From: Trichoplax adhaerens
Lineage: Eukaryota; Animalia; Placozoa
Direction of reading: 5' to 3'
DNA: 64,000 nucleotides
NCBI RefSeq assembly: GCF_000150275.1
Contig: NW_002060944.1
Coordinates: forward strand, 7,516,735-7,580,734
The notes beneath the pieces were generated by a model. The model made no database searches, had not been told where the DNA came from, and worked only from the letters and a program-made list of their open reading frames with translations. Position 1 is the first letter of the stretch. Each line of letters opens with the position of its first letter. The position numbers and the translations under genes were made by a program. Below are positions 8,119 to 56,453 of this stretch, piece by piece.

Positions 8119-19700
<11,582 letters not shown>

Positions 19701-31100: not shown

Positions 31101-31102
31101 AT

Positions 31103-31189: not shown

Positions 31190-32992
31190 ATGATAACGAA
31201 TTCCTGATTATGATAGAGAAATTAAGTGCTAATAATTCTAATTAAACATTTTATATGCTACATTCTATATGTCGAATTATGGGGAATTTTGGATAATGAA
31301 GAGCATTTGATTTCCCGAATGAATGATCAATCTAATTCTTTATAAGTAGTAATAATACGAGTTTTGTTATAGAGTAAAGAGTAAAGACTTTAAATTCGTT
31401 ACTTGTAGTTAATAAAGATTCTGTGTCTAAGCAATCGGTTATTACTGTATTCAGGCGAAAATACTGGAAATTCAAGTAATACAGTCTGTAAATATGCGAA
31501 AGTCATGCAATATGCAAATTCAAATACAGTTTACTATACTGTAGGAAAAGCAGCTTGTTCTATACTCATGCAATCATGCTGCATACTGCTACTTGACCTT
31601 CATATGTTAGTCAGTAAATGATAATGATGATTTACTGTTAACTGTAAATTAACGCTAGGTATTCATTACGCAATCGTTGTGCCGTATAAAACGTGTACAC
31701 TATACTGCATAGCGAAGAGGTACTGTGGCGTAAAAGTGAAAAGCTTTCAAATTATTGTGCTTCTATTGTAGTAAATGATTTCATCCTGTACTGCCATACT
31801 CATATGGGATAAAGTTTTAGAATTTCCGTCGAGATTGTTGAATAAGAGAAGAAGAGAATTATTAGCCCCCCAAAGTTTCACTGACAGTTTACATTGTACT
31901 GTACTGTTGCATGCTGCCATTGCTGCTGTTGAATTTCGTATTCTCTAACATCTAAAACTGACTCGTTGCTACTGGAGCTAAGAGGAAATCACGTTTTTCT
32001 CCTACTTATCTAAATAGAGCTGTTCCATGCAAACTCGCACAGTAGTCTGACTTTATGCACGTTGATGCTCGATACTGAGATACCGACAGTTGATTTTGAA
32101 GCATCTGGCTCTGACATTTGAGAATTGTATCGCTTCTGGTAAGAATAGCAATACCACAGTATTGACTCTCTTACTGTTCTAAAAGCAATTGTCTATGAGC
32201 ACTTTCATTAATCGTGCAGCTATTCATGTTGATAGTTTCCTAGGCTGTTTATCACGACACTGTACATAGGGAATGTGTGGACTGTACAGTATAATAAATG
32301 CAGCAGGTAGTACAAGAGGGGAACGAAATACTGTGCTATTGATTAGTCCCGGACTACAGTATTATACATACATTAGGTAAAACAGCCATTCATCCATTAC
32401 ATTTACATTTATTTGGTTATGACTAAAAACCTCCATTGTAATAACAATAATGCAGATGTTAAAGAAGAAAGTCCTATCCTTGGAAAGAGCATATTCCATT
32501 GCATATGGTAATATCAATAAGGTCATAGTTTGGTAGGGTTGCAGCACTATTTCAGGCATTGTCCAACTTTAAGGTTTGTCGAAAGCATTACGCAACAAGC
32601 ATTTTCCGCAGTTACTCGTACAGTCATTCATGGACTATGTCCACTGTAGAGTACTGAAATGAGTATGATGGTCTAGTAAAATTAGTATTTTAGTAATTTA
32701 TGGTAATCATCGAGACATGAAGCAATGTGTATTGAATGATGCTCAATGTTTAATAGTGCTGGTACTATACAGTGTTTATTTTTCTTTTCAGACTGAGAAA
32801 AAGGGGAAAAATATTACTGATACTAAGGTAAAATTACTATACTTTCTTTCTACTTGATATCACGATGCAGCTGTTTGCCATGCAAAAATTGGAACGAAAA
32901 TAAACACATCGTTCATTTAGTACTACAGTCCATGCCATCAACATGTACCGCCATGGACTATTCAATTGGCGGGATGCTAAAATGGACCTTTA

Positions 32993-33365
32993 ACAGTACA
33001 GTACTGAATGGCGGGGGAGCAGGACTTGTATGAAGAGAATTTCTTCCAAGTTGTTGAGTGACAGCTCATTGTGTAAGTTAACAAGTGTACACTGTACACT
33101 ATGTACAGTGTTGTCTTTGTTGGTCAGTCAAAAGGGGAGGGATTTCAGTACAGTACTGTACAGTACCAGTACTGTACTGTACCAGTAACGGAGACTTCGA
33201 AGAAGTCCATGGGAAGAAAGAGCGTTTTTGACGTACAGTACTGTACTGTACAGTAAAGATCACGGACAGTACCTTGGCGAAGGGAGTTGACGGTGAAGAA
33301 ACCACTCCAACGCAATGAGTATTTGCTTGCCACGCAAGTTTCCTGTACACTGTACTGTAGACTGG
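32993..33365. repeat. TACAGTA/TACTGTA cluster (~1-2 kb upstream of SOCS)
   Basis: e.g. CAGTACAGTACTGTACAGTACCAGTACTGTACTGTA and GTACAGTACTGTACTGTACAGTA. Confidence 0.9.
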
Positions 33366-33695
33366 CACTATATTATTGGAAAAGCTGAATGAAATCATTC
33401 ATACAGTAGGTGTAAGTTGATCAGCAAGGGGGAAAAGATATAAATAAATAACTACGTAAACAATCTAGTGCAAGTAATTACGGTAATCTACAATACTTTG
33501 TTTTTCCAGTTGCTAGTATACAAACTCACTGGTCCCTGGTGATTACCCCTAGTGGCGTCTTTTAAGTGCTAGTAGTCCTACAGTATACCAGTACCATGGA
33601 CTAAAGTACTGTACAGCACTGTACTCAAAATAGAAATTTTTCAATCAATAATAATAATAATACTTTCTACTCGTTGATGACAAGTGCAGTATGTC

Positions 33696-34106
33696 GTCTC
33701 CAGTGTAACTTGAATTGATGAAAAAACGACTGGTTCTATCGAGGAACGTGACCACGTCCAGTTAGACCTGCGGTCCAGTCGATTCCTGTAGACTGTCCAC
33801 TCATAGTAATGAGCATGGAGCTTTTTACTGCCTGTTTAATGTTCCAACCACTCTCATATAGTAGAGTAGACAGTAGGAAAAAGAGGAGAAACTCATTTCA
33901 GTCTCAGTGTACAGTAACTTGAATTGATGAAAAACGACTCGATTCCTGTAGACTGTCTACTCATAGTAATGAGCAATGGAAAGGAATGACTTGACATGGA
34001 GTTTTTTACTGCCTGTTCAATGTTCCAACCACTCTCATATAGTACAGTACAGTAGAGTAGACAGTAGGAAAAGACGAGAAACTCTTTTCAGTCTCAGTGT
34101 ACAGTA
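33696..34106. repeat. Imperfect ~200 bp tandem duplication upstream of SOCS
   Basis: Two copies of AACTTGAATTGATGAAAAA...GATTCCTGTAGACTGTC...TCATAGTAATGAGCA...TGTTCCAACCACTCTCATATAGTA...GAGAAACTC...TTTCAGTCTCAGTGTACAGTA, differing by indels. Confidence 0.93.
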
Positions 34107-34172
34107 CAATGCACTCTGGCCTAGCCAGCAGGTTGGGTCACGTGATCCCCCTGTCATGTGAGTCAAATGTTT

Positions 34173-34417
34173 TTCTTTGAATAATTCCAATTTCTTGATT
34201 AATTTAAGCGGCGGCTCCTTTGAGCTCCTTTGGGCTCCTTTGAGATACTGTGTTAAGGCGTTTGGACTGTTAAGAGGTAGCTTGAATAAATAAGCTATTG
34301 TCTACTTTCATCACAAAGACAATAGAACAATCTTTCGATAACATTATTATTCCGCGAATAGGAAATGCGTTTCCAAGAAATTTTAAATATGGGCCGGTGC
34401 ATCCTGTTGTATATAAG
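34173..34417 (+). promoter_or_regulatory. SOCS proximal promoter with three STAT (GAS) sites and a TATA box
   Basis: TTCTTTGAA (34173-34181), TTCCGCGAA (34350-34358), TTCCAAGAA (34371-34379) and TATATAAG (34410-34417). A possible 5'UTR splice donor AAG|GTAATC lies at ~34477. Confidence 0.65.
34214..34243. repeat. Three tandem 10-mers GCTCCTTTG(A/G)
   Basis: GCTCCTTTGA GCTCCTTTGG GCTCCTTTGA, read directly. Confidence 0.9.
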
Positions 34418-35033
34418 CTGGTGGAATTTGAAAGTAATTTTATTCTACTCCATGAAAAAATAAAAAGCCGTACAAGGTAATCTCGTCTCGACGACCAAGA
34501 TAGCTGCAAAAAAGTGTCTCGTCGGCGCTTTTTGAATGTCTGCAGTCGTTTTGCCTTGTGGGCTGCATCACTCTAGCGTTTTATCCTAGACTCAACATTG
34601 ATTTGCAGTAAGAAGAACGAGAAGACAGACGATCCACTACTTTCATTGATTGATGATCATCACGCCTTGGAATTCAATCCTATTCTACTGATGGAAATTG
34701 ATTGAAAAAATTGATTTACGGACTGTAGGATTCTTCTCTATTTCCATTTCAATCGTCGTCGTCAGTTTTTCAATCTTGATCAAGACAACACTTCAATAGG
34801 ATTAAGCCTATTGCAACCATCGCCTTATACATAGCAACTGCATCATTTTGGGGGCCATAGTAAATCAATCATTATCATCGTCTATCCCCAAATTGCTCTT
34901 GCGTCGATCTCTATCAACTGATTAACTCATCCACTACAGTCAATTCTGTCGCCTTACCGAATCATCATCGTATTACCCTACGTCCAACTCGCAAGACCTG
35001 CATTCATTATATTACTCAACCAAATCTTGAGTC

Positions 35034-35615
35034 ATGATTGGCCAACATTCTCATAACGTATTGGACCATGGGTTGGATCAACAAGCTATCATTAGTATTA
35101 CCAAAGTGTTGTACATGTTGAAGGAAAGTTGTTGGTATTGGGGCAGTCGATTGACTAGCGATGAAGCTAAAAGGATGCTCAAAGCAGCACCTAGTGGCAC
35201 ATTCCTCTTACGGGATAGTAGTAATGAGCGCTACTTATTTGCGCTCACGGTCAAGACCGATGGCGGTGTTACCAATTTACGCCTCAATTATTGTAAAGGT
35301 AGATTTCAATTAGAATCCAACGACGATATCGTCTCTCCAAAATTGCCATCTTTCGATTGCGTTGTTCAATTGGTCAATCACTATACCCAATCCAAAAGGC
35401 GTATATTATATTGCTCAAAGTCATCCAAGACGTCGAATAAACGAAAAGCCATGCTAAAAGTTGAACTGGCTCAACCCTTTTATAACAATGTCCCTAGTCT
35501 ACAACATTTATGCCGTAGGGCAGTTCATAGTCAAATGAATTCTGATACCCTTCGTCAGTTACCTATGGCAAATACCCTGATGCAATACATTATGAAATAT
35601 CCTCATTCCATTTAA
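35034..35615 (+). CDS. SOCS2: Suppressor of cytokine signalling, short type (SOCS1/2/3/CIS clade), intronless CDS
   Basis: 193 aa ORF with an in-frame stop just upstream of the ATG. Short N-terminus, SH2 domain (WYWG...GTFLLRDSS...FALTVKT...TNLRL...FDCVVQLVNHY) and C-terminal SOCS box (VPSLQHLCRRAV...LPMANTLMQYIMKYP). The sequence looks most like SOCS2/CIS, whereas synteny points to the SOCS1 position. Confidence 0.9.
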   Translation: MIGQHSHNVLDHGLDQQAIISITKVLYMLKESCWYWGSRLTSDEAKRMLKAAPSGTFLLRDSSNERYLFALTVKTDGGVTNLRLNYCKGRFQLESNDDIVSPKLPSFDCVVQLVNHYTQSKRRILYCSKSSKTSNKRKAMLKVELAQPFYNNVPSLQHLCRRAVHSQMNSDTLRQLPMANTLMQYIMKYPHSI

Positions 35616-38600
35616 ATGGTAGTAGCACACGCTCAACTTGCATCACTCCAAACGCTATCAAGTGAATAGATTGATAGCCTAAAAGTATAAAGTTGCTTGA
35701 TCCACATCAAACCGAGCATCAATCTGCCTCTTACTGCTTATATTGTCTATAAATGTACTTTCAAACATGCTAGAGGAAAAGTTTATTTCAAATCAGCGTG
35801 TATCACCGATCGTCAATGACTAAAATTAGACAACTATGATGTAGCTAAGGTGATGGCAGTTTTTTCTCCATATAAAAATAATATTAAGGTAATGATCCAG
35901 CATAGCTAATCAGGTTAGTTATATCTTGGATCGACTTCTTTCGTTCTTTGGAAATACTAGATCGGAAGTGGGTACGGCTTTCAAGCAAGACAATATGCCA
36001 TTTATGGCGTTCTTTAAGACGTGCACAATCAGTATACTGCACAGTATTACACAATGTGCAGTCAATTTGTAGTTCAATTACGACTTTATAATTTTCAACT
36101 AGACACTATAGTATGTTAGTGATTGTTGTTATTTGATAATTATTAAATCCATCAAATGGTTATGGTAATTATACGAGTTATAATGATTGAAAAACTTGAT
36201 TGTTTCTTCCATTACTCATATTCTCTTTGACCTTAGGAAATCGTCTAGTAAATGGTGATTGCTAATTACGTATTATATTATTACCATGTCTATGATACGG
36301 GACAGTAACATTAACTGTTTGTCATTATTTGGATGAGTTTGTTTTAATGTCTGCTTTCAAGTCACAGTGTGATCTCTGTACATGAATCAAGTATCCAAGT
36401 TCTAAAGCAACTCTTCAATGACTGCTATTCTTAGTAGTAAAGAAAATTTCAAACTAACTTGTACATTCTGATTCGCAAGGGTAGTACCCTATACATCTGT
36501 GATTGAAACTGTCAACGACTGACCAACACCAATGTTCTAAATCTTGATAACTAAGTTTTATTAGCAAATTATCTCAATTTATATCAACCAAGTTGTAGGA
36601 AGTTTTGTATATTTTGAAAATAATTATACTGTACACAATTGCAAATGTGTATATCAATAGAACACTACAATTTTTTTGTTCAATTTTATCCAAGATTGTC
36701 TCAACTTATTACGTGACAATGCCAAAATTTTTCAATTTTTATTTTTAGCATCGTTTATAAACTTCTGCTACATTGATGGCTCATCTTTCATCACTATTCA
36801 ATCCATAATCATGATTACAGTGTATATAGATAACAAAGTCATCCATTTCTATCAATGAATATAGTGACGTACACCAGCCACAGAATTTATCCCCTATAAA
36901 ATAGGCTATGGCGTCTTGATCCACTATACATATCTTTACATATCTAATATGTGTTAGGGGCTGTCATGCCACCATAATTTGTACAATTATTTCTAAACTG
37001 ATTTTTATCCATGAAATTCTTATACTGGAGTGTTTGATATTGCTTTTTAAATCTAAATCCATCGTCTTATTTATTACTATATTTATATAATGCAATACCT
37101 TCTTACTAATGGATTAACTCAATATAATCGTGTTTCCATGATTTTGATACCATCAAATCAAATAAAATACTCTGACTTCGATATTATATCTGCTTGGTCT
37201 ACATTACAGTATATATTTATTCATATTTAGAAATTGCCTGTCCACTAAAACAGAGTTGTGCTAGGTTTTGCTAATGTAAAAATACCAAGTAATCCGACTA
37301 ATTTTTAACACGCGAGTTTGCTTACAAATAGAAAGACGATACTTGCACTAATGTTGAAACATGCCGTAATACACGTTATGTAATGCATGATGGTAACATG
37401 CAGTTTATCACATCAAGCAGTATAGTTAGCAAAAAATTTCTTAATAGTATAATCTAACTACGATAGCATTACCAATATTTTTTTTACCTTTGGATGGATC
37501 ATATCTTACTGCTGGATATTAGGATGTATTTGTACAGCAAGCTACAAATACGTGACGCTAATTCAATCCATATGCAAAATAAAGCATACAGGCATGTATA
37601 TGAAACAATTTAGTGCAGGGTCACAATATCGTTTTTGATTCCAGCTAGCATCCTCGTTTATTCCTGACATTACTTAATCATTTACTAGTTGCTTAAAATT
37701 ACCCTAGGTAGTAAAACTAGAATCTCCGTATCTCAACACCATTTTATTTATTACGTCAACAAGAGCTATAATAATTATTATAGCTAAGTGTTTCTACTAC
37801 TCACTCTATCGTCAACTACATGAGGACAATTACCACTTTTGTATAATAATATAAGGTTCAGCGCACAGCACAGCTTTAATGGTCTTCATTTCATTCATTC
37901 TTTCGGTTTGGATGGTGTTTTGTGTTTTGATCATTTTTTACTATTTTATTTATTCTATTATTTCATTAGAGACATAGTAGTTATCCAATCCGAATAATAC
38001 GTTATCTCACTTCAGTTCTCTCGTAATATGATACATTGATTCAATCATACTCGTTAGCAAATTTGCTCTATCTTGTATAATTTAATATCAATGCACACAG
38101 TAGTTATGCAAGACATCTGCTGTAATGCATCTTTTTATAGCTACCCAGTTAAATATTGGTATCAAGAAGCTGAAATTGTAATTTTACTCTGTCAACCCAC
38201 TATTCTACGAAGTGTGCATCACATACGCGTATTAAATCTAGCTATATAGCTGGAATAGCTCAGTTTAATCGGCTTATTTTCAATTCACCATAGTTTAAAC
38301 CAAGGATTCACTAATCATGATAAATGGTTTCCATCATTTGCTCGTAATCAATATTAAGGAATTTTGAATGGTACATTTATTTCGCTAGAGTCAGATCTGT
38401 TGTTAAACATTTTACTGCCCTATTACGACTCTCCGTTAAACATAAACACCCATATTGGTAATAAAATAACTTGCTTCTCTTCGTGTTCATTCTTCATGAT
38501 ATGCCAATAAGATTACTGTACAATCTATTGAAGCTTCTTGTGCTGATGCCATGTGTTGATAAGAGACTTTTACAGCTACGATTTATTATTATCTCAATAA

Positions 38601-41600
38601 CCTTTCTATCGTATCCCATGGATGGATGTGTATTTCCGAAATAAGTGCAGAAGAGACTATGCAAATATTTTGATATGAATTTTATTTTTCGATCACTTTG
38701 CACAATAAATTTCCACTAAGCTTAATATTTTATCACTCCCACTATCATAGTGAATATGATCACTGTCATACTGCATAAATTTTGTCTGGCTCTGTTGTTG
38801 ATGTATGTTAGGCAAAAGTAACTCGACGGTATTATTACGGATAAATAATTAACATAAAAATTCGATGTGATTGTCATATTGTTTAAAATTGTGCACTAAA
38901 AGAATGCAAATTTGGTAATAGATAGAGACATTCCGTCAAAATAACAAAAAGTCAACAAAAAATCTTCATTGAAGTACCTTCTATTTTTCAGATTGACGTC
39001 ATTATGACAAGAAAGAGTCGTAAAAACTATTAAGAAATTATGAAGAGTGAAGATTAAGAGGTATACCATTTGTAAATGATTTAAAAGGAATTCTAGATGC
39101 TATTGGATATTAAAAAGGTGTAATCTTGGAGAGCATTTTCTTATAATAGATTTTGAAGATCTGATAGGGGCAGTTAGTAATTCCAGTACGAGTTTAGCAA
39201 CATTAGAGTTCCATATTCTATGTAAAAAATTGGAGATGATGCATGAAAACGTATCGATCCGTTTATTTGGTAAAAGAACTGTAGGAAACACTCAGGGCCA
39301 AAGTTAAAGCAAATAACTCTAAACGGATTGACATTATACTCAAAATCGACTTCGCTACATCATTGATATTTAAGAATTTTGGGATGTTTGTCTACGTAGA
39401 TAGCAAAAATGGAAAATTACAAATGGGCTACATGGTCACCAATACTCTCTATATTTACTGTAGTAAGACATTGACAGTGAGCACATTTTGATGCTTTCTC
39501 AACATGTATCATCGAATAGTACTGATAGGACTAAAAGAATAGAAGTAGCTTGTACAATATACACAATATGCCATGAGTATACACTAGGAAAAACATGAGT
39601 TTAATCTTCGTCTTCATAGTATTTGTACAACAGACTCAAATTCTATTGACTTTTTGGAGTCTCTACAGTAGAAGCAACTAAATTAGAAAAACAGAAGGCA
39701 ATTAATACTATCTTATTTACTATTCTGCCAAATTATCATATTACTTGCCATTGGTTGATTTTCAACGCTAAATAGGAAACATAGTGGTCATAATATTTCA
39801 ACTTAACATATATGTCACGAGATAAAAATGAGATCATTAAAGTTTAAAAATAAAAAAAAATATGCATGTTTCGATTGTAAATACAGACGTCATTTTGATC
39901 ATGTCTATTGCAAGTTCGTACTACGTCAGTAATATAATTACGGATAATATTGTAGAAATTGAGCTTATGTGCTACAGTATTGTATCGTGTTATGATTGAT
40001 GTAGAGAATAGATTGTAAATATAACTCAAGTGGTTCATGGAAGAACGAGGTAGTTTTTATTATTTCATTCAACTATAGCCTATAAGAAAATGATCATGAC
40101 TTTGAGTATATTACATTATGTCTGCCTTTCATTTCTGATAAAAATGGAAAATGAAATCATTATCTGCAAATCTTTCATCTATTTGGTAGACTTGTAAATG
40201 ATCGCACATTACATTACACATCTGGATTTTAGTTGTTGGATGATGTTATTCCTCAATTATAAAACAACAATAGATTATCCACATTTACCGTAAAAGATGA
40301 TTACAGTAAATTCCATGCAAGATTGGATTGTCCTGTTGTGTGAGGTATTATCATCTTTTCAGACAACATAATGATTGATGCTTTTTATTCGTATGCTATT
40401 AAATAGAATCACTGAGGTTAACAAAGATCACATTGACCTAGGATACAATTTACCATCTAATTGTGTAGTAACTAAGAATGTTTTATATCTTTTAATTGTC
40501 TATATCGTACAGTGATATTGATAGTAGCGTATATAATATGGATGGTCGTTTTCTAATGATGAATAGATTGATTAGGCATCATAAATGTGAATAGGCATGA
40601 ATCAATATCGATATGCAATATGGCTGTTGATGATATCTAGTTTATAGCTTATTGTTTATTGCATATTAACTATTTTAAATTACTAGAATATCATTTCAAT
40701 CTATAAATGAAGTAGAAACAATTAATCAAAGTAACAACAGCCAGTTGCAACATCGACCATCGACGAATACTTTAACAAGTCGAAGTAAGTACCGCTTATT
40801 TTGGTCTAATTTGTTCACAACTGCGTAGGTGAAGGGTTTAAAATGATGAAAAGAAATACGACATCAATCAATGTAAGTATTAAGCTATTTTCTGCTTAGT
40901 TACAAGTGTAGAATGGACTGTGCTGAGACTCTTAACTCTTAACAGTAGGCAATTATATTGTATCTTACAGTTCCAATTTTTTTCTATCTTTCTATATCAC
41001 CACGTCAGCTGGCTAGCAAAAAAGACAGTTGTATAAATGAGTGGTCAAGGTATTTCATCTCGACATCAGTAAGAATAATATTGCTAAGAATAAAAAAGGT
41101 GAAGGGTTACGTAATGCGAATAGGAATATTTTAACTGATTAGTAACATCCTGTTATAGCTGCAATTATTTCTCGCGGCTTCTATTAAATTGATTTTTGCG
41201 ATCAATTTTCTCTCATTCTACCAATATCTATCAATCGCATATCATTGTAATAACTATGGGGACAAAAGTACTGTCAGGATAAAGAATTATATTTTTTCTC
41301 TTCATAAATTATCCTGTTGAATAATGAATGATGCAGCCGACAGTGCTATTAATCTAATGAACAATAAAATGAGAGATTATAATGAGATGACGTGATATCC
41401 ATTAACTATGATCATTTCTAGTAAATCAGTATGTGGTCTACAATAGTTTATTTGATATAATGTTTGTTTCATTTTATTTGGATATAGGTTTAAGAATTGT
41501 GCTAGGCTTGTTGTTTACAGAAAGAGTATTTCATTACTGCATCATCTGCTCTGAATGGTGTGTGCATTATAAAATAGTTAGAGGAAGTTGGTCTGTATAC

Positions 41601-44600
41601 AGTAATAATGGAGTATAGGGATGAAAAGATCTTCAACAATCGCTCTTTTAGACACATATTGTATATAAATGAATGAATCTTAAAATAAAATTAATGTAAT
41701 AGCATGGGGAAAGACCGCCCTCATTCGAGTCCTGTAGTCTTGAATTTTTAAACATTCTTCATAGGTGTCATGCGCTTTCTCACTATTTTCAATAGCCAAC
41801 TTAAATCATGGATCACTAGTTCTCTACAAATAAATGTTACTTTTTATTTTCTAGTAGTCCATGTCTCGAATAGTTTAAATTTAATTTGGATTTCACTACT
41901 TTATCCGTTACCATGAATAATATTGCAAATTAATAGATTCCAATTGGAAAGTATATTAGCATTCTCATGGCATATGGATATAGATCTTCTTAAATTCTAA
42001 TTGAATACAATAATATAGCATAGGCTGCTCTTTAGAGTGTTTCTGCTAGTTCTTTAACTTTTTAAATACCGTTCATTCATGTATGATAGCACCCTTGATT
42101 TATGGAAAACTAAAGAAAAATCTTATATTTTCTTTTAATGGTCCATAACTTGAATAGTAAGGGTTAAAAGCTTATTTTACCATCTCTATACTTGAATTAT
42201 GAACAACTAGAGAACAATCTTACATTTTGTTTTAGTAGCCCATAATTTGAATGTTCAGTATTAAGATCTTATTCCACCACCTCATCAATTTATCATAGCA
42301 TAAAAAATAGTACAAGTTACAGTAGATGATGTAAATTGGCCTGTATAGAGCAATAATGTACATATTACAGAGTACCGGTAATTCTTCATTCTCAACTTTT
42401 TGTACAAGTAGTTTCTTACATATTGCGAAATATCTATACAGGCTACAGAGATACACTATAAAATGCTGATATTTGATTCCGTTGATCAGATTTTCACTAT
42501 CGTATGTACCTAGGTCTAATTTTAGACTGCTAATTCATGTATTGTTACGCATAATGCTCCGTTGGTGAACTACTGAGGTTAATTTATTATAAGATGTACA
42601 AGTTCAGTTAGAAAGTGTGGCAGATGCAAGCAAATACCGTAGGTCCACTTGGTCATATTGATGATAGATTGTACAGTAAGGATATAGAATGATATTGAAT
42701 AATATTGTTGAATGAGAAATTTAGTAGTTACAGTTCAAATAACGCAGACTGTAGCAATCATATCTGACTAGGCCTTGCCATTAGTAAAATATGTAGGCTA
42801 ACTGACTCAAATTTAGTGCCATAAATGATAGTAAATAGATAGAATGGCAAATTTACAATTGCCTAATAGATTATATATATATATACAGACAGGTAATCCA
42901 GCTCAAGTTTTTAGATTGTTAGGTTCTACTCCTAGCTGATATTCAATTAGTAACCATTATTAAGCTGCGAAAAAATACATTGTACAGTAAAGCTCAATAA
43001 AGGACTTTAAGCATACTGTATTTCTAATAAAGTGAGATATGTCTCATATAATTCACTTAACTTTCGTGATGTAACTTACTATTAAGAAATATAGTATACT
43101 TTCGTCCGTAGTCTATATGTTTCTCACGTACTATAGACCACAAAAGATTTTAATATAATAGATTAGTAGTCATAATGAATACCTAAAAATAGATCAAAAG
43201 TTTAGTATAGTAAATCGTGCATAGTTGTCTTTTGTGGTATATCACTAATAAGTCGTACCATTAAAAAACATTTAATTCATACGTACTATAAGCCATAGAA
43301 ATTACACTGTGCTGTATAAGCTATATCAGTGATAATGCATATTTTGGTTCTATATTTCGGTATACGCCTTCACTAGACTCTGGTATACGCTATCAAGCTG
43401 TGCAATTTGTTGAAATAATCCTATAAGAGTCATTGATATATTTTAGCGTCCATCATCCAAATGCAATCTACAACGAAAATAAATAATCTGTGATGATAAA
43501 TGCAAGTGTTTTGTTACAAATAACATACTGTAATATGATTGATGCCGAAAAGTTAATCGAGAGTAATTCTAGTCAAGGAAATGCATAACAGGGCGACTTT
43601 CAGAATTTGCCTATTTTACGTTTAGGCAATCTATACTGCGTAAACTCACCGCTCAGGACGCAACATGAACGCGTTAATGATATCTATACGTGTTGAAATG
43701 AACTTCATCAGTACAATTCTAAATATGCCTTATGTAAGTTAATTATTTTGTATTCTCAAGACTTAAAATGACGATGCTAATGCTATAGTTTTGAATTTGA
43801 CTTGATCATTGCCACTTATCCAGTATTGACTTGTCTAGGTCTCATCGATGATACCGTCTTGCGCTACAAGTCTAAATTATTTCACTTTAATGTAGCCATG
43901 TCACATTTAGTTATCCATAATAGATTAACTAAGAATGAGCTGAAAGGGCTAATCACTTTGCAACATAAGAATAATAAAATAATCCAATTTAAATTTCATG
44001 TATCCACAGAGGATGAATACATTGTGTCTCGTATTTACAATATATGATGTTCAGACGATAATGATAACTTACTCTTTATGCACTCGGTAATCAATATCAG
44101 AAAATTGAAGGTTTAAAAAAAGCCGTTTAATAATGTTGAAAGTTACTATTTAAAAAAAGGACTGCAATAACTACTCATGCATGAACTCATTCAATTTCAA
44201 TTACTGTACAGATCATGGATGACATTTATATACAATATCTTGCTGATAAACAGGACATTGTGTGCCATTACATCCCTAAGTGAATAGGAGAATCCAATCG
44301 ATACTAAAATCCTATTGACCAGAAATATCTGTCCAGAGCATAGCGGAAATCTTTTCATTGATATTTGTATAAGGCATTTTTTATTGTATCAGAAATCGAT
44401 CATCACCAATTTAAATATAAGAAAGGAAAACATTAAAAATATGCTTTTACTATCACGTGCAACGTTTTCTTGTTTAGTAATATATCAAGACAACATTGGC
44501 AATAAATTTAATAATTTATGTTTCATACGAGGCAGTCGTGTTAGCTTATACCCGTATAATGAATGATATGTATACATATATATATAGATAAATATACTGC

Positions 44601-45936
44601 ACATATATACAGTATATACCTTTTATAAGTTATAATTTTTATATAGTATCAATGAATTATAGTTGTGAACGTTATCAACTCCAATTTTAGATCATTTAAT
44701 ATCGAAGCACTATTAAGCATAAAATTTACCCAAACTACTTCTGTAGTACTTGAAAAATTATAATATATAAAGAGTGATCAATAAAGAAGTGATAATTAAC
44801 AAACACGCTTTCACATGGCAGCATCAGGTCACGGCATCAAGATATACCGTGTTTTTTTTCTATGAAATGCAGTCACAATTACCTTTCGCTAAATTCGTCA
44901 AATTGAATTGGCTCGAGGACAGAAAACTTTATAGTTATTACAATATTTAGCAGTTTAATCAGTTAAATATATTGCACTAGTGAAATATTAATTATTACTA
45001 TTCCTAATTTACATCTTATAATGCGTAATAGTGTGTTATTCAATTAAACAAATTTCGTAATATGCTTATAATGTCATCTTAATTGCACTGCAAGATTACT
45101 ATAAATGTTATAAGCTCTAATTTCATTTCAAGATCATATTCTCAAGATGCATTGATTATTATTTTCAATCATCACTAACTTAAATAACGTTATTAAACAT
45201 CTCTAGTTAATACGTACTTAGATATATACATATGCTGTAAATATATACAGCTATATTATACATAGATACAGTGTTAACCAAAATATACCGTTAGGAAATC
45301 ACTTGAAATTTAAAAAATTGTACATGTTCGTATACTGATGTCAGGCCAAACTTGTTTAGCAAGTGAACACATTGATGTCATTCAGCTTATTATTTAGAAG
45401 ACAAATATACATCGAGAAATTGTGTTAACGGCAGTGTGTTGCATGCGGACGGTTGTAAAAAACTAGTCTATATAAGCAAGATGTACATAAATAATATCGA
45501 CTGATTAGCCATTACACGTCTAAGTTTAATTAACGTCACATTAGGTGTATATTAATTTTCAAAGGCATTGATATAATAAATATCCACGTAAACGTATCAC
45601 AAATAATAGATATCTAGTTCGTAACTGCATTCGTGCAAGTACATAATTGTGGTGTAATATAAAATTTAGATAAATCTTAAACTCATCTTTATCAGGATGA
45701 TATGCATTGTTACTTTAAGCTTTCGTTGTAAATTTATAACGAAAGATACATCGTTAGATGTAATTCATTGATGTTATAAATACAGGTTTTATTCCAGTGA
45801 ATATCAATATAAGATATAAATAATTTTTCTTCCGAGATATTAAGACGGGTAGATTTTATATAAAATTTTATGTACTGTACAAGTATACCTGGCCTTCTAC
45901 GTATTAGCCAAGATTGAGTAAAACTGCACTAAAAAT

Positions 45937-48900
45937 TTAATTTGTATCATTTCTTAACTCCTCAATGTTGTTGTCTGAATCACCATCTACTGCATTTTTT
46001 TGTGCAGAATTACCTTTTAAAGGAGGTAATAACCTAACTGAATCATTATTACCTAAGTTTGCAGTTCCTAGGGAGCGATTTAGACTTCCTTTCAAAGACA
46101 TATCTTCACTAATTTCATTTCCAGACGTTATTTCGAATACAGGGGAAGGAGGTAATAGTTGTACATTAGAAGCGGAAATTTCACTTTTATCTGTTGCTTT
46201 GTTGACAAAGGTATCGCTGTTGCTGCTTTGTGTTTGTACAGTTGCTTCATCTGTAACTGAATCATTATTAGAGCGACTATTATCGATGGTGGATTCATCC
46301 AGTTTCAACTCATGTTGAGGTTTCGGTGCTTCATTAATAATTGTAGAAAATTCTTCAGTTACAGCGGGTTTCATTTGCAAATCGGATGTGGAATCATTTT
46401 TTATAATATTAGCAGCATCATCGGCATTTGCGGCCTGGTTTGCTGCTGAAAATGAAATGCCTAGCACTTGCCCGAGTTGATATAATTTCTTCTGTCTGAC
46501 GATAAGTCGACCTCGTTTTAAACGCTGTCTAGCAACAATACAGTTGATATGGTCAGTGAAAACAAACTTTGCCGTTAACATGGACAAAGTACCGCGACTA
46601 ATAGCAGTTGCAGTTGAGGTTTGCCGTATACTAATTTGAAGAGATTTGTTGTCATCACGTTCGCTGGACACTTCCACGTCCTTTAGTAAAAATAACGACA
46701 CCGACAAAGTTATAGTTTATATTACATTAATATCTTGAACTGAATGAAACTTAAAGCAAAGAATATATAAATCCATCAACAATTTGAAGGATTTATCATT
46801 ATACCTGCAAGTTTCCAACAAAACGAACAATACCCCATCCATATTTCGTTGAATCTGTATCAACCAAGATAAACTGTGTTTCTCTAATAGCTAGAAAGCG
46901 TCGGACCATTCTAAAAATTAAATTTTAAGAAATTTTTAACGTTAATGGTACAAATAATACCAATAAAACAAAATCAATTCAGCTTAGTATTACTTTTCGC
47001 TCGTTATGACATGGCAAGCTATTAAATCGATATTGCCTAGTATTAAAATAAGAAGCAAACGTTATTTGCGCGTTAATACGCAATTATTTCTTGATTTGTT
47101 AGAAAGAAATATTCAAATGATACGCTCACACATAGAAGATACTGTGTGAGGGGATATATTACTAACTTAATTCCAAAACATCTTTAACATTTATTGATCC
47201 AATAATATCAAATAACGATAGATTGTTATTTCTTGTTCCTTCGAACTTGTTAACTAATTTTCTGGTCATTAAGTAGATTCTCATAGCCTTAAGCATATAG
47301 CAGAGTATAAATTAAGATTAAATTCAAGGATCTCATCATTTAATGATAGTTAGCAATGTTATTAGCTTACTCGGCGTGCCCTTTCTATTGAATTACAAGG
47401 TAAACGTTTAGAAAATTCTATAGTGGTAATTGAGGAGCGGCTGTAGGGAAGTAGCAACGATCCGTCCATGATTAGCTTACTAATTCCAATAGGCTTGTTA
47501 TTCTAGTATACGCAATTTATTAAAAACATTGATTATTAAGTATTTAAAACCCTAATAGTACATTTCAAGAGTGTAATATCTTCATACGGCAAACCTTTAA
47601 ACTCCGGTATTCATCCTCAAACATGTCTAAGAATACATCTTCCACCTTTATTTAACGCCATCATATTACAAAAGAGTACTACTGTTAGTTTCGTATGATC
47701 AGTAACCAAGAATGTTTTAAAAATTTAGTTAGAATTCGGAATTACCGTATAAAATACCCTTAGTTGCTCAGCAGAAAGTTCTAGTACCCTCTATGCAATA
47801 ACAACAGATTGAAATGCAATATCAACATAAGCTGCCAACATCCACATTATCGATTTGCTAAACAGTTAATCTAGCAATTAAATACTTATTGAATGTTAAA
47901 ACTAACGTAAAGTGATTGCACATGATTTTCACAAAGCAATCGCGCATTTGAATGAGGATTTATAGATAGGTGTTCCAAAGTTCTAATTAAAACTTCAAAG
48001 GTAACAAGACGGGTATGGCTTTCTGTTTAATGGGATAAAAACCAATATTAAGTGATAGCTTTAAATTGGCATTACAGCTATCGTTACATCTATTATTCAA
48101 GTATAACTTTGTAACCTTGAGAGCAAGACATTTCAGTAATGCTGAATAGTTTTTCAACAAGTTCATAATGATGAGGAGCCTCCTTGCGTATAAAATATTA
48201 GAGAAGATACATTCATATTTTTTCAACAATATGAGCACATAAAATTTATTACCGCTTTAGGCGTTTCTCCTAACGGTAGAAGGTTTTTTAACAAACTTGG
48301 GGATATACCTTGTAGTAGAGATAGAGTATAAACACAATCATTTCAGTATAAAAAGCTCTATTAAATAAAGTAGAATAAATATCTTACCTTTAGTTTCCAA
48401 AATGCCATTTACTAAAATTAATATAAAAAGTATAGCAGTATCTTCATCGCTACTTTCAATATACTTTAGCAATTCTTTCCAGAACAGCGTTGAGCTTCTG
48501 CAAAATTGATAGTTACAGTCAGTATAGCGATTGATACGAGCAAAACGCAGTAGCACAGTTAAAGAGGAAGCGCATATTTAATTGAAGCAATTTAAGGTCG
48601 CATTCAACATTAGTACAGTATAATTGGCGTACCTATTATTTAGTTGTCCCTGCATAACAATCAAAAAATATGAATAAGTATAGAAATATTTAGAACATAG
48701 AAAATGCAAGACTATTTAATTACCTCGACAGTAGATAGATTATCCGTCGCTTCAGTGGCTAATAATAAAAAAAAATTTCGATAAAGATGATGAGCCACTT
48801 TATGCATTTGCAATAGGTTCATAGTTGATAACTTACATTCAGAATTTGCGTCATCGCAAATGTTCGAATTTTTTTCAACAGCTGAATCGATCAACGATCC

Positions 48901-51900
48901 ATTTTCTGTGTTGATCTCGGAAGGCCATCCAGAATCAGCAGTTAAAGTTGACGTAGATTTCAGTGTTGATAAGGAGTTCTCATCCAGTTGGTTGTCAATT
49001 TTCGACATCGCCGATGAGCTTGCATCTGATTGGTTATTAGAATTTTCTTCATCTTGCCGCTGCTCAATTTCTGTTGTTGTGCTAGTGCCAACGTCGGAAA
49101 AGCTACTCTCACTGTCCGAAGAAACACTAAGCTCATCAGAAGAACTTTCTGGAAAAAGAAACTGATCTCCGTCGAAGCTAGTATTGACGGTAGCTGTAGT
49201 AGTCTTGACTTTGAATGCAGATAATGTCTGACTTAAGCCTTGTTGTGGAGGCCCAAAGACGCGGTAACAGCCAAGTAATGATACGCTTCTCTTTTTCATC
49301 TTTGGGAATGTTAAAAGTAATTACTTCGATAGCTGTCAAATGATCAATGAAAAATAACTATATTGTAATAAAATTTTGTACATACTAAGCCTGAAGAAGT
49401 ATTACTGCTAGCATCTGACGATTTATGAGCTTTCGTCATTAGAATAGATTCCTCGCCATACAGTACAATATCGCAAAGGCAAGAGATCAGCGGTCGATAG
49501 GAAATAATATAGAATATCTATAACAAAATATAATCATATATAAGGAATATAATTTTTAGTTAATAACAAAAAATACCAATTATGTTAACTGCAAATATTC
49601 TAGACTGTATCTTGAAGATATATAATAATTGCATAGCTGTAGTATAAAGACATACTTCACTCGAACTGTGATCCATTTTTATGCTTACATGATAATATAC
49701 TGTAGTGTAAGTTAGCCAATAAAAAGAACTATAAAAACAATGTCCAGCATTTACCTGAGAGAGTAAATAAATGGCAATGGCAGGATGAATTCTAGTTTTC
49801 GCGCTCTGGAAGATTAAAATAGTACATTTATTGTGAGTTTTTAAAATTTTGAACTCAACTACAGTTAAATCGACAATCAATTAAACTTGTACAATAAATG
49901 TATAAATAATAAGTTAGATTAAATCTTACTTGGCCGTTGTCGCCATCGTCTCTTGGCATTTCTTGAGTAAGCAAGGAATTAACATACAAGGGAATTATCA
50001 ATCGATTGAGTAGTTGATCTGTTAAGATACTATTTAAGCAGCCGATATTAAGACAATAAATGTCGTTGATATAGTGTAAATGATCCACATGTTCAGCAAC
50101 GAGATCTTTTAATCTTGAACAATTTGATAAACTATATCAAAAATTATGACGCATATATTAGTGCACATATCCTTATAATATTTACTATGGTCCTGAAAAA
50201 GAAAACAGTATCTGATCTAAAGAAAGCAAGAAGGATTTTTGACTAACCTAGATTTAATGCGATAAGTATCAATCTGCAAAGTTACATTTCCAATCGACCA
50301 TGCTAAGCTAGAAAAGTACGGAATAGCGGTTCGATTTCGAATAAATCGTAACATCGGAGGATCAGCAACTGTTAAGTGTAACAAACAAATTGTGTATAGC
50401 ATAAACACATTATAATCAGTAAAATGAAAATAGCTGCAATTCTCTCTATACATGCGTTTGATATATATAAATAACATACAATACAGCATACAGGGTGTAT
50501 CCAGTAAATATACTCGTAAGTGATGTAGTACCTCTGAAAACATTTAAGGTGAGTGTTCTAACGGCCGTACGGACCATACTCTCGCTGTGATCAAAAAACT
50601 TGATTGCTTCGGTGTATAAAGGAAAATTTTGTTGATGCTAACATATGTAATACAAAAAAAGCCAACTTACGTAATGCTCAAATAATACTTCATGAACAGA
50701 TGAAATACTATAGGTGGTGTATACGTATAAAGGGTGATAGAGAAAATGTATGTCATAATATTCTATGTATGAATATGTCGTTTATTGAAGTGGGGTATCA
50801 TATTATTAAAGAGTATATTATTTTCTCAGATTTACGTCTACAGTTGACTATTATTATAATGCATACAAATAGGTAACATTCACACAAGTAACGATGACAT
50901 TAGGTTAAACTAGTTGTTACAATGTAATTTTTAATTGAAATTGCATCCAAGTTATACAGAATACGAGTATAGTAGTATTATTATGAAATATCGATTGTGA
51001 GTACCTCATTGTAGAAGAAATGGATTGTGTCTTGATCCAATTTTAAAGATAGAGTTTTCAGTATAGAAATATAGTACGCTAGTGTCTGAAATATAAGCCG
51101 TTAAACAATTAGTAGTGCCCTTATTAACTGAACCTTCGATGAGAATTCTATACTTGTTTATTTATCCGTTCTACGTACCTCATCATCGGAAAAGTCATAT
51201 TTATAAACAATTACATTATTGATATGGTTATTGGATAGCAAATAATCTGAAAAGATCAACATTAAGTGAAGCAATTAAGACCCACGTAAATAAATTTCTT
51301 TGGGGTAATAATACTCGTCATTAACTATTTCCTGAATCAGTGATGACTGTCATGTAAATAGTACTAAACTGCTAGTTATAATATAGTACCGTATAATTAA
51401 AAGCGAAGGTTGATTTTATAGCATGATATGCAACATCTGCGCACATTGTAAAGATGACATTAAGGCAATATCATTTTCAATGTTCATCATATCAATTAAA
51501 AATTAATGTTTAACTTACATAAAGAATTTCTATTTCGAAGATTTTCCAGCAAGATATTAATTGTTTGCAATAATTGAACTCGTACAATCTGTGATTTTTG
51601 CTCCAAGAATCTTATTAATAGTGACAACATGTTCTTCTCGGCGAATAAGCTATAAAGGCAATCATGGTTATAGACTTATAGATATTGTTTTCATTGACAC
51701 ACACCTGAGTATAATATTTTGAAATATATCGGCAACACCGAACTTATGAAGTGTATTGCAAGACACCCTACTACTAAAAATGAGCATGTCATATTTATCC
51801 TAATCATAAGCATATCAAATAGCTCTAGTTAAAATATTTATAGGTAGTAATGGAATCAGTGGTATACATCCATCCAGTAGTTGCTGTAAATATTTATCGC

Positions 51901-53770
51901 AAAAGGGGGAAGCCATGAAGGCAATAAAAATTTCCCGTATAAATGACTCCACTAAATATGAGTACATGACTATAATTACATCTAAATTAACCAAAGCGAG
52001 AATTGATCGAAGAAAAGTTATTCCTACAATGTAACATCTTACAATTATAATATCTTGATATTTGTTGTGGTTGTAAGATTTTTCTCGTATAGTACAATGA
52101 TCAAACTACTTGCTGTCTATTTTTCGTACATGCCATAATAACACATTGCATTCAATTGAAAAATCTTTACTACTTCCTGCTACAAGGATAATTTTCAAAC
52201 AAGTTAGTTTTACTAGTAGTAAAGTAAAAAGTGACGAAAGGAGTTTTGTGCATTTCAACTAGCATTATAATGCTAGTTGTGAAGTCATTACCCTCCATGC
52301 CTTCTCCTAAACATAGGATATACGAGAAACTTTCTTGCATGTTATATCAACATTGATGTTATTTTGCTCAATCAAACTGGATTCAGTAATTGGATAGAAA
52401 ATGGAAAATCGCAACAATATGGTATTGAATGGAATCAACATTCTACTCTTAATATTATAAATAAATATTACTATCACAAACAGGTTTAAAATGTTATGGT
52501 TAAACTATTTACAATTGCTTTCTTTTACCGATAAGAGTTGCTAAGACATCTTATCTTCCATTGCTCGAATGTTATTTATTGTAGATGATCGTGATAATCT
52601 CAGTATCATGTCCTAAGGACAATACATTATATATCAAGACAGCAGCAAGGGTATTTTATACTGATAAAGTAATGGCAATTATGATTCATGATAGCCAGGC
52701 AAAGTCTCATTCCATGTGATACAATATACAGTAAGTTTAAATTGTATCGAAACGAACGAGTGAATTCAACTATTTCTACTGGTGGTCAAAAAATGTCTTT
52801 TGATGAAAGGGAAAGTCTTATTGATTTTTGACAAGCTGAATGCTGTCCTACTATTTTATCATCATTTGTCTATATACATACAGTATCCATCGTACACGAT
52901 TATGACGCTAGTTGGATGGAATTTTCCATAGACTATTCATTGTATCGTAACAAAATGAACTTACTCAAATATTCTTCCATCGTGTTGATCACCCCAGATA
53001 ATAATTTCTGCCATAGAACGCAAGGATTCAACGATTAATCCTCGATTGCGGTCAGTAACGGTAATGTTTTTCAACAAGACGGTATATAAATGCCTAAAAA
53101 TGAATGTCATGGTCAATTTTTACATCCTTTTGACTGTTTTTTTTATTCATAAATTGAAGGCAAGTCATTGAAGGGTGCTAAATTGTCATGGGTGTAATCC
53201 TATATTGGACTATTTTTGATGGCTAAAGAGGCTTGTCGAACTGGTGGATTACCATTTTCTTTTAACACATGTTTAAGTGGCTCAGCAAGAGTGTCCAATA
53301 CTACAGTATACTGTATAGTTGTACGCATACATACTACTCGTCTAGATCATGCTATGGAGATCAGATTGAAGCAGTGTAACTATGATAGTAGGATAAAGAG
53401 CTGTACGTCTCCAGTTGATCCTATCGAAAAGAACACTTTGATACAATCTTTCTCTACAACGTACTAGAAGGAATAATAATTTCTATTGGAAATCTCAGCC
53501 AAGAATGAAGATAATCGATTCTTGCCGTTCTAATTCACTGGCGTTAACCTTTTACTCGACTGGACAATACCTAAACTACAGCTAAGTAGAGTATAGTGGT
53601 CAAACAAGAGGATGTTGACAAAGGTGTGTAGTGTGCATGGCAGATGTGAATGGCAAAATGTTCTGTCATGCAAAAATAAGCAATGAAATTTACCGCAAAT
53701 GTTCCATAGACATAGGCTTCTTTGGTTTCCATAACGTATCTGGAAGCCAATTTTTACGCTTTTGAAACAT
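45937..53770 (-). CDS. CLEC16A: CLEC16A / Ema / GOP-1 (FPL-domain endolysosomal and autophagy regulator), multi-exon
   Basis: Exon 1 (53694-53770) [26 protein letters not shown]. Exon 2 [38 protein letters not shown]. Further exons give [93 protein letters not shown] and [22 protein letters not shown], followed by a disordered tail. Confidence 0.95.
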
Positions 53771-53889
53771 TTTGTTGAGGAATTATTTTCGCACGCATCA
53801 TTCAAAAGGTTCCAAGCAACAGACAAAACTGACGATAGACTAAGGCGGTGGTAGTATCTGCCAGGACAATATTTGCTCTACGGTGAGTG

Positions 53890-55152
53890 AGTGTACTGTA
53901 CACTGTGCACTATGTACTGTACACTCTACAGTAGTCTAGAGTTGTAAACAATATTATTCTACTCTCTCTTGTGCTTCAGTTGTCCACCCCAAACACTACG
54001 TGCTGTCGTGGTGTAAAACAGTCTAGTGATACCGCAGCTCAAGAATGGAAAAAAGTCCCCAATTTTACAAGCTATACAGTACAGTACAGTACCTACAGTA
54101 CTGTAATAATGTACTGTACACTGTAAAGTCCGATTATTTTCCATGGCACCCTTGGCCCTTGGTTCAAAAAATCAAAGTTGAACTCTGTTCTAGAATATTG
54201 ATATCTACACCCGTAGAAGAATATCTCCACAGATACAACTACATATAGAATTGATGTAGTTTGGTCCTGATTGAACTTATACAATTCTATCTTTTCAGGG
54301 TGCCATCGAAATAAATTAGATTGTACATTGTACAGCAAGGAACACAATCAGACTGCAAGTAGTTGATGGAATGGCTCTTAGGCTCTTCCACAACATCCTG
54401 TCCGTCAAATCAATCCCGTGTATTGTACACTATATAGTATACAGCGGAGACTGACATACTGTACTGTACAGTACTGTCAACTTTGACTTACAGAACATAT
54501 ACACTTATTATATAGTACGTTAACAGGGTCTCCAATCAGTCGTCCTTGTCACCATTTTCGATTTCAATGGTCAGTTATTAATGAAGGAATGTTGATTATA
54601 ACCGACAGTGTATAAATCCAATTTCAAATGATTTATTGGAGTTTTACTGTGAGAGCGGCACTGTAATTTTCACCTTTACACATGCATTGCCCACCCTAAG
54701 CAATAAACCATAGGAATAAATACCAATGAATTTCTTGCTAGTCCAATGCATCCAACTCGTCACTTATTCAACTACACATTCAACACCGATACTATAGTAT
54801 CTGGCAGCCAAGAGCTCAGTATACTATACTGTACGGTAATCGCCGCCCGATGGTCAGTTACGGTTAGTCCAGTTGAAATGAGCAGCAAAATACTGTAGCC
54901 GATGGACAGTACTGTACACTGTACACAGTACTGTACAGTACAGTGTACAGTACACTAGTTCCCAGTTCTACAGTACTGTACTGTACGATAAAGATCTACG
55001 GCCGTCCGACTCATACTGTCCAGAACAACGATCTTCTTGTACTGTACTGTACTGTAGGAAACATTTTTGACATTCTGGATCCCTCTACTGTGTACAGTAC
55101 GGTACAGTACAGTACTGTAGCAGTAGCCTGTGACTGTACTGTACTGTACGTA
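53890..55152. repeat. TACAGTA/TACTGTA clusters in the CLEC16A / secreted-protein divergent promoter
   Basis: Clusters at ~53890-53935, 54074-54125, 54420-54478 and 54890-55152. Confidence 0.9.
54114..54335. mobile_element. Degenerate MITE-like element (~222 bp) with ~39 bp terminal inverted repeats
   Basis: Left arm CTGTACACTGTAAAGTCCGATTATTTTCCATGGCACCCT (54114-54152) versus the reverse complement of 54297-54335, CTGTACAATGTACAATCTAATTTATTTCGATGGCACCCT: 31/39 identical, ungapped. TA lies on the left flank and CA on the right; there is an internal hairpin AACTACAT...ATGTAGTT. Confidence 0.55.
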
Positions 55153-55265
55153 GTTTAGTCACATGACTGCAGTCAACCTTGCCCCCCGCACTGCGCTAGT
55201 AATGTAAAGCTATCTTGACACTATAGCAACATTTATAGTTCGTGCTCTCTTAGCTGAGTCGAAAA

Positions 55266-56453
55266 ATGGCTAGGCAATTCGAAAAACTGATTTTACTTTT
55301 GGTGATAATAACAATCCCTTCATGCCTGTCATTGAGCCTGATAGAGGGTCATTATCATACATGGTGGGCTGTAGTGCAGTTACCACGTCAAGATGTGCAA
55401 GATATGTTGCCGAAGAATATGCCAAATCGGAATTTCACACTGCAAAAACCCAAACTGAAGGGATTGAAAGATGCGATGCATCCTGTTGTATTCGAGTTGG
55501 GCACGGAAATTCACACAGGCCCTATCTTTCCTGGGTTTCTCCAAAAAACATTTACTGAATTCAAATTCGAAATTCCATGGGTAAATCAAGGTAATAAACG
55601 AAATATTTCCATCTTATACAGCAGTTATTTTGGATGCCTTGCGTATAGTGTAAACTCTATGCTATGGCTTGGCCTCGATTGTGTGCATGATGTTCTTGTA
55701 AATTACAGCACACTTAACAACATAGTACGTACTACCATGATACTACGTAGGTAGATTTAAAACCTTGACAAGTTTACCTGATGATGTAAATATGATAGTA
55801 ACGCATTTCTTTAGCAGGGGCTGTTGTGAACTGTACAAGATTATAGTTAATAATCAAGCCAAGCAGCACAGTACCAAATTTCTTCAATCTACAGTATTGT
55901 TTTAATATTCGTTCACTACCTACTATTGCAAGCAAATTGATAATATATTATTGTTTTTCCCCTCCTATCTCTAGCTGGAAAATCGACTCCCACTGTATAC
56001 AAGTACGTTATCTATACAAACAGCTCCTTTGAATCGTTTTCTACCAGAGAATTTTACAACTTAAATTCCGCTGCTATCAGAATGAACATGAGTGCCAATA
56101 GCTACTTTATGCAATACAAAGATACTTCATCCAAGCTACGTGCCGAATTCCAAAATCAGACTGCGAAGTTCAGCCCAGCTAGTAGCTATAAATATTTTAG
56201 CGTTTATCAACAAGTAATGTCGCAAGAATGGTTTGGCGATGCCGACCCAAAGACTTATACTTGTGCTAATCACCACTACGATTTTAGTACGACTAAAGTA
56301 CGACCAGCAAAAATGCAGTTAATGGTTTCTAATGGCCTTTTGCCTCCCAAATTTCCTACCAATAAATTGATTGCTACTCCAGGACTGAATCAGCCTCTTG
56401 GAACTGCTGAAGTTTTCACCACTTTCAAATTGACACTGCCTCATAGCTGTTAA
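55266..56453 (+). CDS. Uncharacterised secreted protein (~267 aa, 2 exons), possibly acetoacetate-decarboxylase-like fold
   Basis: Exon 55266-55590 (phase 1 donor GTAATA) joins exon 55975-56453 in frame, merging the two ORF-track pieces. Hydrophobic signal peptide MARQFEKLILLLVIITIPSCLS. The fold assignment rests on motif recall only. Confidence 0.7.

Follow-up and report, generated by a model that had tools for sequence, protein, structure and literature searches.

Is the neighbourhood of a SOCS gene and CLEC16A, familiar from one of the human autoimmune loci, older than the vertebrates, and what could have kept two such genes together? This question is raised by a stretch of 64,000 nucleotides from the placozoan Trichoplax adhaerens (contig NW_002060944.1, positions 7,516,735 to 7,580,734 of the forward strand; hereafter the window), in which a SOCS gene lies next to CLEC16A (Ema/GOP-1). 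The human region concerned, 16p13.13, is among the most replicated autoimmune-risk regions, and the target gene of the CLEC16A intronic variants is still debated. In the human genome, we take SOCS1 to lie about 70 kb past the 3' end of the + strand gene CLEC16A and to be encoded on the - strand, i.e. in convergent orientation. As described below, the convergent pair of Trichoplax recurs in an octocoral and in a brachiopod, and it was very probably inherited from an ancestor that these animals share.

In the window, the two genes face each other tail-to-tail with a stop-to-stop spacing of 10,321 bp:

35034-35615, + strand: type II (SOCS2-like) SOCS gene, a single exon with an open reading frame of 193 amino acids and a stop codon
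35133-35384, + strand: SH2 domain, residues 34-117 (Pfam PF00017, E 6.4e-10, 39 bits at a cut-off of 21)
35487-35591, + strand: SOCS box, residues 152-186 (Pfam PF07525, E 7.4e-8, 33 bits at a cut-off of 23.5)
35616-45936, no strand: convergent intergenic gap of 10.3 kb, without a recognisable protein gene and single copy in the genome
45937-53770, - strand: CLEC16A, complete from its ATG to its stop codon, with about 19 coding exons and collinear exon-by-exon Pfam matches

A preliminary description of this DNA, made from its letters, had placed a short-type SOCS gene beside CLEC16A in convergent orientation. The open reading frames and Pfam domains of both genes bear this out, and the interval given there, 35034-53770, runs exactly from the SOCS start codon to the CLEC16A start codon.

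The predicted SOCS protein has the architecture of its family, with an SH2 domain in the centre and a SOCS box at the C-terminus, the latter also being recovered by a genome-wide scan with PF07525. Its N-terminus is short, with 33 residues preceding the SH2 domain. As for the kinase inhibitory region of SOCS1/SOCS3, only about 15 residues are available ahead of the extended SH2 helix. Against proteins of solved structure, phmmer scores are highest for SOCS2 (115 bits), followed by SOCS3 (81), SOCS1 (70 and 64), SOCS6 (54) and SOCS4 (44). In a search of 1.8 billion representatives, those of the best 150 matches that carry a name are SOCS2 and CISH of vertebrates, SOCS2-like proteins of invertebrates and a SOCS3-like protein of a hagfish. 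Because of these structure scores, the short N-terminus and the named relatives, the gene is, judged by its sequence, a member of the CIS/SOCS1-3 class and not of SOCS4-7. A single socs1/2/3/cish precursor has been inferred in invertebrates, which gave rise to the four vertebrate genes via two genome duplications (Liongue et al. 2012, PMC3296744). Seen in this way, the gene of Trichoplax would be co-orthologous to CISH, SOCS1, SOCS2 and SOCS3, and hence to the SOCS gene of the human pair, even though it is most like SOCS2.

CLEC16A was searched exon by exon, using Pfam and local tblastn. The gene begins with an ATG at 53770-53768 and ends with a stop codon at 45937-45939 on the - strand. The CLEC16A_C region spans the exons from 49858-50136 to 45940-46716 (profile positions 2-581), and it is preceded by the exons of an FPL domain. 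This combination of FPL and CLEC16A_C in one gene, which is taken as the mark of CLEC16A, was established through the exon-by-exon Pfam matches:

50449-53119, - strand: five FPL-domain exons, matching PF09758 profile positions 1-148 in order
52964-53119, - strand: FPL exon, PF09758 positions 1-20
51499-51675, - strand: FPL exon, PF09758 positions 14-65
51161-51274, - strand: FPL exon, PF09758 positions 66-88
50984-51100, - strand: FPL exon, PF09758 positions 89-115
50449-50637, - strand: FPL exon, PF09758 positions 116-148
45940-46716, - strand: last coding exon, 259 codons, PF19439 profile positions 506-581

Other animals were surveyed from the SOCS side, using SOCS2-like genes with 10 kb of flank each. 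In the octocoral Xenia sp., a SOCS2-like gene (10001-12512 of the locus, + strand) is followed 2.6 kb downstream by a gene for a protein of 1079 amino acids on the - strand, i.e. in convergent orientation. Exons of this neighbour match Pfam CLEC16A_C at profile positions 376-417 (E 1e-17), 475-508 (4e-10) and 510-584 (9e-18), and they align in order with the last three conserved CLEC16A exons of Trichoplax. In the brachiopod Lingula anatina, SOCS2 (10001-10903, + strand) faces a gene for 1326 amino acids located 6.7 kb downstream on the - strand (17558-20903). This neighbour has FPL and CLEC16A_C on record, in agreement with local tblastn and Pfam searches. The conserved start of the last Trichoplax CLEC16A exon finds tblastn matches in both loci, at 15953-15681 in Xenia and at 19591-19316 in Lingula. 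Moreover, the SOCS proteins of Trichoplax, Xenia and Lingula rank the solved structures alike, with SOCS2 and SOCS3 at the top and SOCS1, SOCS6 and SOCS4 lower.

By our own arithmetic, a named pair of genes would be neighbours in convergent orientation with a probability of about 5e-5 if the genome has at least 10,000 genes, and for two further occurrences among some ten lineages tested the chance is of the order of 1e-7. Chance cannot account for such recurrences, and therefore the SOCS-CLEC16A arrangement very probably existed in the ancestor shared by placozoans, cnidarians and bilaterians. Synteny of socs1 and CLEC16A has been described from fish (zebrafish) to human (PMC3296744), so that the pair, always convergent, now extends over Placozoa, Cnidaria (Xenia), Lophotrochozoa (Lingula) and the vertebrates. 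The proposal of a pre-bilaterian microsyntenic pair, put forward in the preliminary description, thus gains support from the octocoral and the brachiopod, and a grouping of the SOCS gene with SOCS4-7, which had been named there as a reason to abandon it, was not seen (SOCS2 > SOCS3 > SOCS1 >> SOCS6, SOCS4).

The gap between the two genes appears devoid of protein genes. Its ten longest open frames contain no Pfam family, searches for Rfam families, tRNA and repeat families found none, and the annotation of Trichoplax sp. H2 has no gene in the 10 kb downstream of SOCS. The GC profile shows no islands in the gap, and GC likewise failed to separate the short CLEC16A exons from their introns. A transposon-filled gap was rejected, since the gap sequence is single copy in the genome. 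The earlier statement that no recognisable gene intervenes therefore holds for protein genes, as judged by Pfam, Rfam, tRNA searches and the H2 annotation, but it has to be amended for RNA. RNA runs contain 18-25% of the gap words, and contigs of four runs, placed on 37800-43799 (with 35616-37799 and 43800-45936 outside this range), revealed a spliced transcript on the + strand:

38750-39060, + strand: first seen exon (contigs 38750-39163 and 39031-39192; donor GT at 39061; 5' end not defined)
40687-40872, + strand: middle exon (joints in runs X6 and X9; acceptor AG ending at 40686, donor GT at 40873)
41009-41776, + strand: last seen exon (contigs to 41446 spliced and to 41776 unspliced; 3' end not defined)

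Contigs from two independent studies join 40872 to 41009 across a GT..AG intron of 136 nt (40873-41008, + strand). One run (X6) joins 39060 to 40687 across a GT..AG intron of 1626 nt (39061-40686, + strand), where the seven letters between the two sides of the joint were assigned to 40687-40693. Unspliced contigs cover 38750-43799 patchily, and there are none in 37800-38750. The middle exon contains stop codons in all three frames, the longest ATG-initiated open reading frame of the joined model has 52 codons, and the transcript is absent from the H2 gene set. It is a low-level, spliced and probably non-coding RNA that runs in the same direction as SOCS. An additional coding exon of SOCS was also considered and rejected, as the SOCS reading frame has its own stop codon and the middle exon is stopped in all frames. 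Concerning the RNA check proposed in the preliminary description, no protein-coding gene came to light between SOCS and CLEC16A, while a low-level and apparently non-coding transcript did. The adjacency of the two protein genes is thus left intact, yet the gap is not silent. The first AATAAA lies 1.5 kb downstream of the SOCS stop codon and 143 bp downstream of that of CLEC16A.

Why, then, should the pair persist? Ancient pairs have been attributed to two main causes, namely co-regulation, mostly of head-to-head genes, and regulatory blocks, where enhancers of one gene sit within an adjacent bystander (Irimia et al. 2012, PMC3514665). The human locus offers a precedent for the latter. In human T cells, enhancers within CLEC16A introns contact the SOCS1 promoter, and their repression by CRISPR interference (CRISPRi) lowers SOCS1 (PMC11211866). 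In addition, a CLEC16A risk allele is an expression quantitative trait locus for SOCS1 (PMC4512731), and in beta cells a cytokine-responsive element of 16p13 loops to SOCS1 (PMC9903835). According to the reading favoured here, one type II SOCS gene would already have stood tail-to-tail with CLEC16A in the placozoan-cnidarian-bilaterian ancestor, and the arrangement would have been retained in Trichoplax, Xenia, Lingula and the vertebrates. After the two whole-genome duplications, only the SOCS1 copy of the vertebrates would have kept CLEC16A as its neighbour. Part of the cis-regulatory landscape of SOCS, an inducible gene, may reside within the 3' part of CLEC16A or past it, and CLEC16A would itself be a bystander; a break between the two genes would therefore misregulate SOCS. 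Taken as a whole, i.e. as an ancestral pair that persisted as a regulatory block, this statement appears to us evenly poised between true and false. That a regulatory constraint keeps SOCS with CLEC16A, as suggested by analogy with the human locus, falls just short of such an even balance. Only tentatively can it be proposed that the block predates the split of placozoans, cnidarians and bilaterians, with SOCS enhancers in or beyond CLEC16A for more than 600 million years and the gap transcript marking such an element. If true, a block of this age would explain the action of the human autoimmune-risk variants in CLEC16A introns on SOCS1.

One feature of the surroundings of the Trichoplax SOCS gene is in keeping with this reading. 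The gene is flanked by about 18 kb without another protein gene (7.2 kb upstream and 10.3 kb downstream), as compared with 1.2-1.5 kb for the other intergenic spacers of the window, and such surroundings suit a gene with a large regulatory landscape. Members of the type II SOCS family are characteristically induced by STAT, and they bring elongin B/C-cullin 5 to phosphotyrosine targets. Three candidate STAT-type TTCNNNGAA sites, at 34173, 34350 and 34371, are clustered in 210 bp (34173-34379) some 650-860 bp ahead of the start codon of SOCS, and nine of the 24 TTCNNNGAA sites of the window fall in 28.2-34.4 kb.

Several observations weigh against the favoured reading. These sites are not enriched in the gap, and their total in the window is not above chance. 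The spacers of Trichoplax, Xenia and Lingula share no similarity detectable by tblastx or blastn. The H2 locus, the sole second placozoan locus compared, is at 98.6% identity too close for footprinting. Bystanders typically have long introns rich in conserved non-coding elements, whereas CLEC16A of Trichoplax spans 7.8 kb with a longest intron of about 1.3 kb. The support for a regulatory block comes from human data, and applies to Trichoplax by analogy. The human CLEC16A-SOCS1 orientation, in turn, is presumed here. A tree of named SOCS2-like proteins, the kind of phylogeny that had been suggested as a check, delivers in part. Its branches roughly match the species groups, each invertebrate lineage having one gene, and groups of sponges, placozoans, protostomes and vertebrates are supported. 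The deep nodes, however, lack resolution, and SOCS1 and SOCS4-7 reference rows are absent from the tree. Finally, the intermediate lineages give a divided answer: the pair is convergent in Xenia and Lingula, but within 10 kb of SOCS no such pair turned up in the amphioxus Branchiostoma belcheri, a Geodia-like demosponge, Nematostella, Porites and a third hexacoral-like genome.

At the hexacoral, Branchiostoma belcheri and Geodia-like sponge loci, tblastn detected no CLEC16A exon. In Nematostella, the gene downstream of SOCS2 encodes a death-domain kinase, and Porites and the third hexacoral-like genome have the order Kelch-SOCS2-SHMT. The hexacorals share SOCS2 surroundings of their own, with an FAD-oxidase and/or BTB-Kelch gene upstream and SHMT downstream. 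Since this arrangement is common to them, it suggests that SOCS2 left CLEC16A once, in the hexacoral stem. Little can be read from the lack of CLEC16A within the 10-kb flank in the mite Tropilaelaps, the chiton Liolophura, the acorn worm Ptychodera and a spiralian-like genome, since spacers are large or contigs end there. The simplest interpretation has the ancestral pair breaking up on several later occasions. As it is not universal, any constraint must be breakable. Given the result for the Geodia-like sponge, the origin of the pair may or may not be still older.

These losses lend themselves to another explanation, according to which the ancestral pair was retained by chance, as a neutral leftover in slowly rearranging genomes and without a functional link between the genes. 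Trichoplax and Lingula are known for keeping ancestral linkage. Hexacorals and amphioxus, at least, have broken up the pair, and in the demosponge it was not found, neither gene being obviously lost; nor was any non-coding sequence found that the phyla share. These points speak for a neutral leftover. On the other hand, a strict neighbourhood with one and the same orientation, kept by four lineages more than 550 million years apart, is hard to obtain in this manner, and human enhancers within CLEC16A do regulate SOCS1 (PMC11211866). Neutral retention is possible, if less likely than not.

Another conceivable cause lies at the 3' ends themselves. The output of both genes may be coupled by convergent transcription, by a termination or insulation that they share, or by the gap transcript, which runs toward the CLEC16A 3' end. 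All four lineages have the tail-to-tail orientation, the Trichoplax gap harbors a spliced + strand transcript seen in two studies, and the spacing in Xenia is short with 2.6 kb. However, spacings range from 2.6 over 6.7 to 10.3 kb, and presumably reach about 70 kb in human, so that overlapping 3' ends are not general. Furthermore, the gap transcript is of low level with undefined ends, and the annotations of Xenia and Lingula show nothing that corresponds to it. Such an interplay is therefore improbable as the reason for the persistence of the pair. A merely coincidental likeness to the human locus, with SOCS and CLEC16A meeting independently in each lineage, can practically be dismissed: the pair was picked after the fact from a window of about eight genes, but when new genomes were tested it recurred twice with the same orientation, at the above chance of about 5e-5 per genome.

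Returning to the window, the neighbours of the pair are ATG12 and a WD40 gene at the SOCS end, and beta-tubulin and an orphan secreted protein at the CLEC16A end. ATG12 (- strand) lies about 7.2 kb upstream of SOCS, within 26660-35033, a position projected from the H2 annotation, and no gene is annotated in the 7.2 kb between them. CLEC16A is a regulator of autophagy and mitophagy, and ATG12, on the other side of SOCS, is likewise an autophagy gene. Just upstream of CLEC16A, two long open frames at 55254-56450 (+ strand) resemble a secreted protein without an assigned family. Short tandem repeats of the CAGTAC/TGTAC type, which read as 'VQYSTV' in open frames, occur on both sides of the SOCS-CLEC16A block:

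33146-33187 and 55092-55125: CAGTAC/TGTAC-type repeats
27860-28140 and 53840-55160: further repeats of this type

The 20.6 kb around SOCS are 98.6% identical to a contig of Trichoplax sp. H2, which matches the pair region to the end of its 10-kb flank, ending before CLEC16A. The H2 strain contains a 99%-identical protein of 193 amino acids annotated as 'Suppressor of cytokine signaling 2', and a second placozoan SOCS protein, 81% identical, likewise has 193 amino acids. As an in-frame stop codon also lies immediately upstream of the ATG, SOCS of T. adhaerens is regarded as a single coding exon. A protein search with this SOCS returned only four proteins, among them H2 SOCS2 and no exact T. adhaerens entry; the gene may perhaps be absent from the T. 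adhaerens gene set in the searched collection. The matches of a profile search started from it were nearly all vertebrate SOCS2, and a query with Lingula SOCS2 added few named invertebrates. For placozoan biology, the locus thus presents a SOCS2-like feedback gene in an unusually gene-poor stretch of 18 kb that includes an unannotated spliced transcript.

Some elements of this picture are already known, i.e. the vertebrate SOCS1-CLEC16A synteny, the human regulatory cross-talk and the existence of conserved metazoan gene pairs. The deeper conservation of this pair appears to be new. Searchable text held no mention of a SOCS-CLEC16A pair outside the vertebrates, and none combined CLEC16A, SOCS1 and microsynteny. 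The main text of Irimia et al. 2012 (PMC3514665) does not name the pair, its supplementary list aside, so that a prior listing is possible, and neither CLEC16A nor SOCS is listed by name in the supplement of Robert et al. 2022. If the linkage is pre-bilaterian and was kept in at least four distant lineages, it would provide an independent evolutionary argument for a shared regulatory landscape and for SOCS1 as a genuine target of the human variants. Small genomes suit the dissection of such a landscape, given a block of about 19 kb in Trichoplax and a spacer of less than 3 kb in Xenia.

Compared with other invertebrate SOCS2-like genes, that of Trichoplax is alike in its short N-terminus, its SH2 domain and SOCS box, and its size within the range of about 190-300 amino acids; each invertebrate genome sampled had one SOCS2-like gene. 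A scan of the whole Trichoplax assembly with the SOCS-box model found one gene with both SH2 domain and SOCS box, which is a lower bound, whereas four SOCS classes have been reported for Nematostella (PMC3296744). Apart from this gene, the scan matched two genes with ankyrin repeats (ASB-like) and one each of the SPRY (SPSB-like) and methyltransferase-like kinds. SOCS4-7-type genes may be missing from Trichoplax.

The human and vertebrate 16p13.13 locus, with its order CIITA-DEXI-CLEC16A-SOCS1, differs from the Trichoplax window in that CIITA, DEXI, NUBP1, RMI2 and the protamines are all absent from the latter. In addition, the Trichoplax SOCS is nearer to SOCS2 than to SOCS1, and its spacer measures 10 kb as opposed to tens of kb. 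What both have in common is CLEC16A standing tail-to-tail with a SOCS gene of the CIS/SOCS1-3 type. From the microsyntenic pairs and genomic regulatory blocks described earlier (PMC3514665), the present pair is set apart by a regulator that is a signalling feedback inhibitor and not a developmental transcription factor, and by a Trichoplax CLEC16A without long introns. Yet it resembles them in that two unrelated genes, a small regulator and a many-exon housekeeping gene, remain adjacent across phyla, and in that the introns of the bystander hold the enhancers of the regulator, at least in the case of human CLEC16A.

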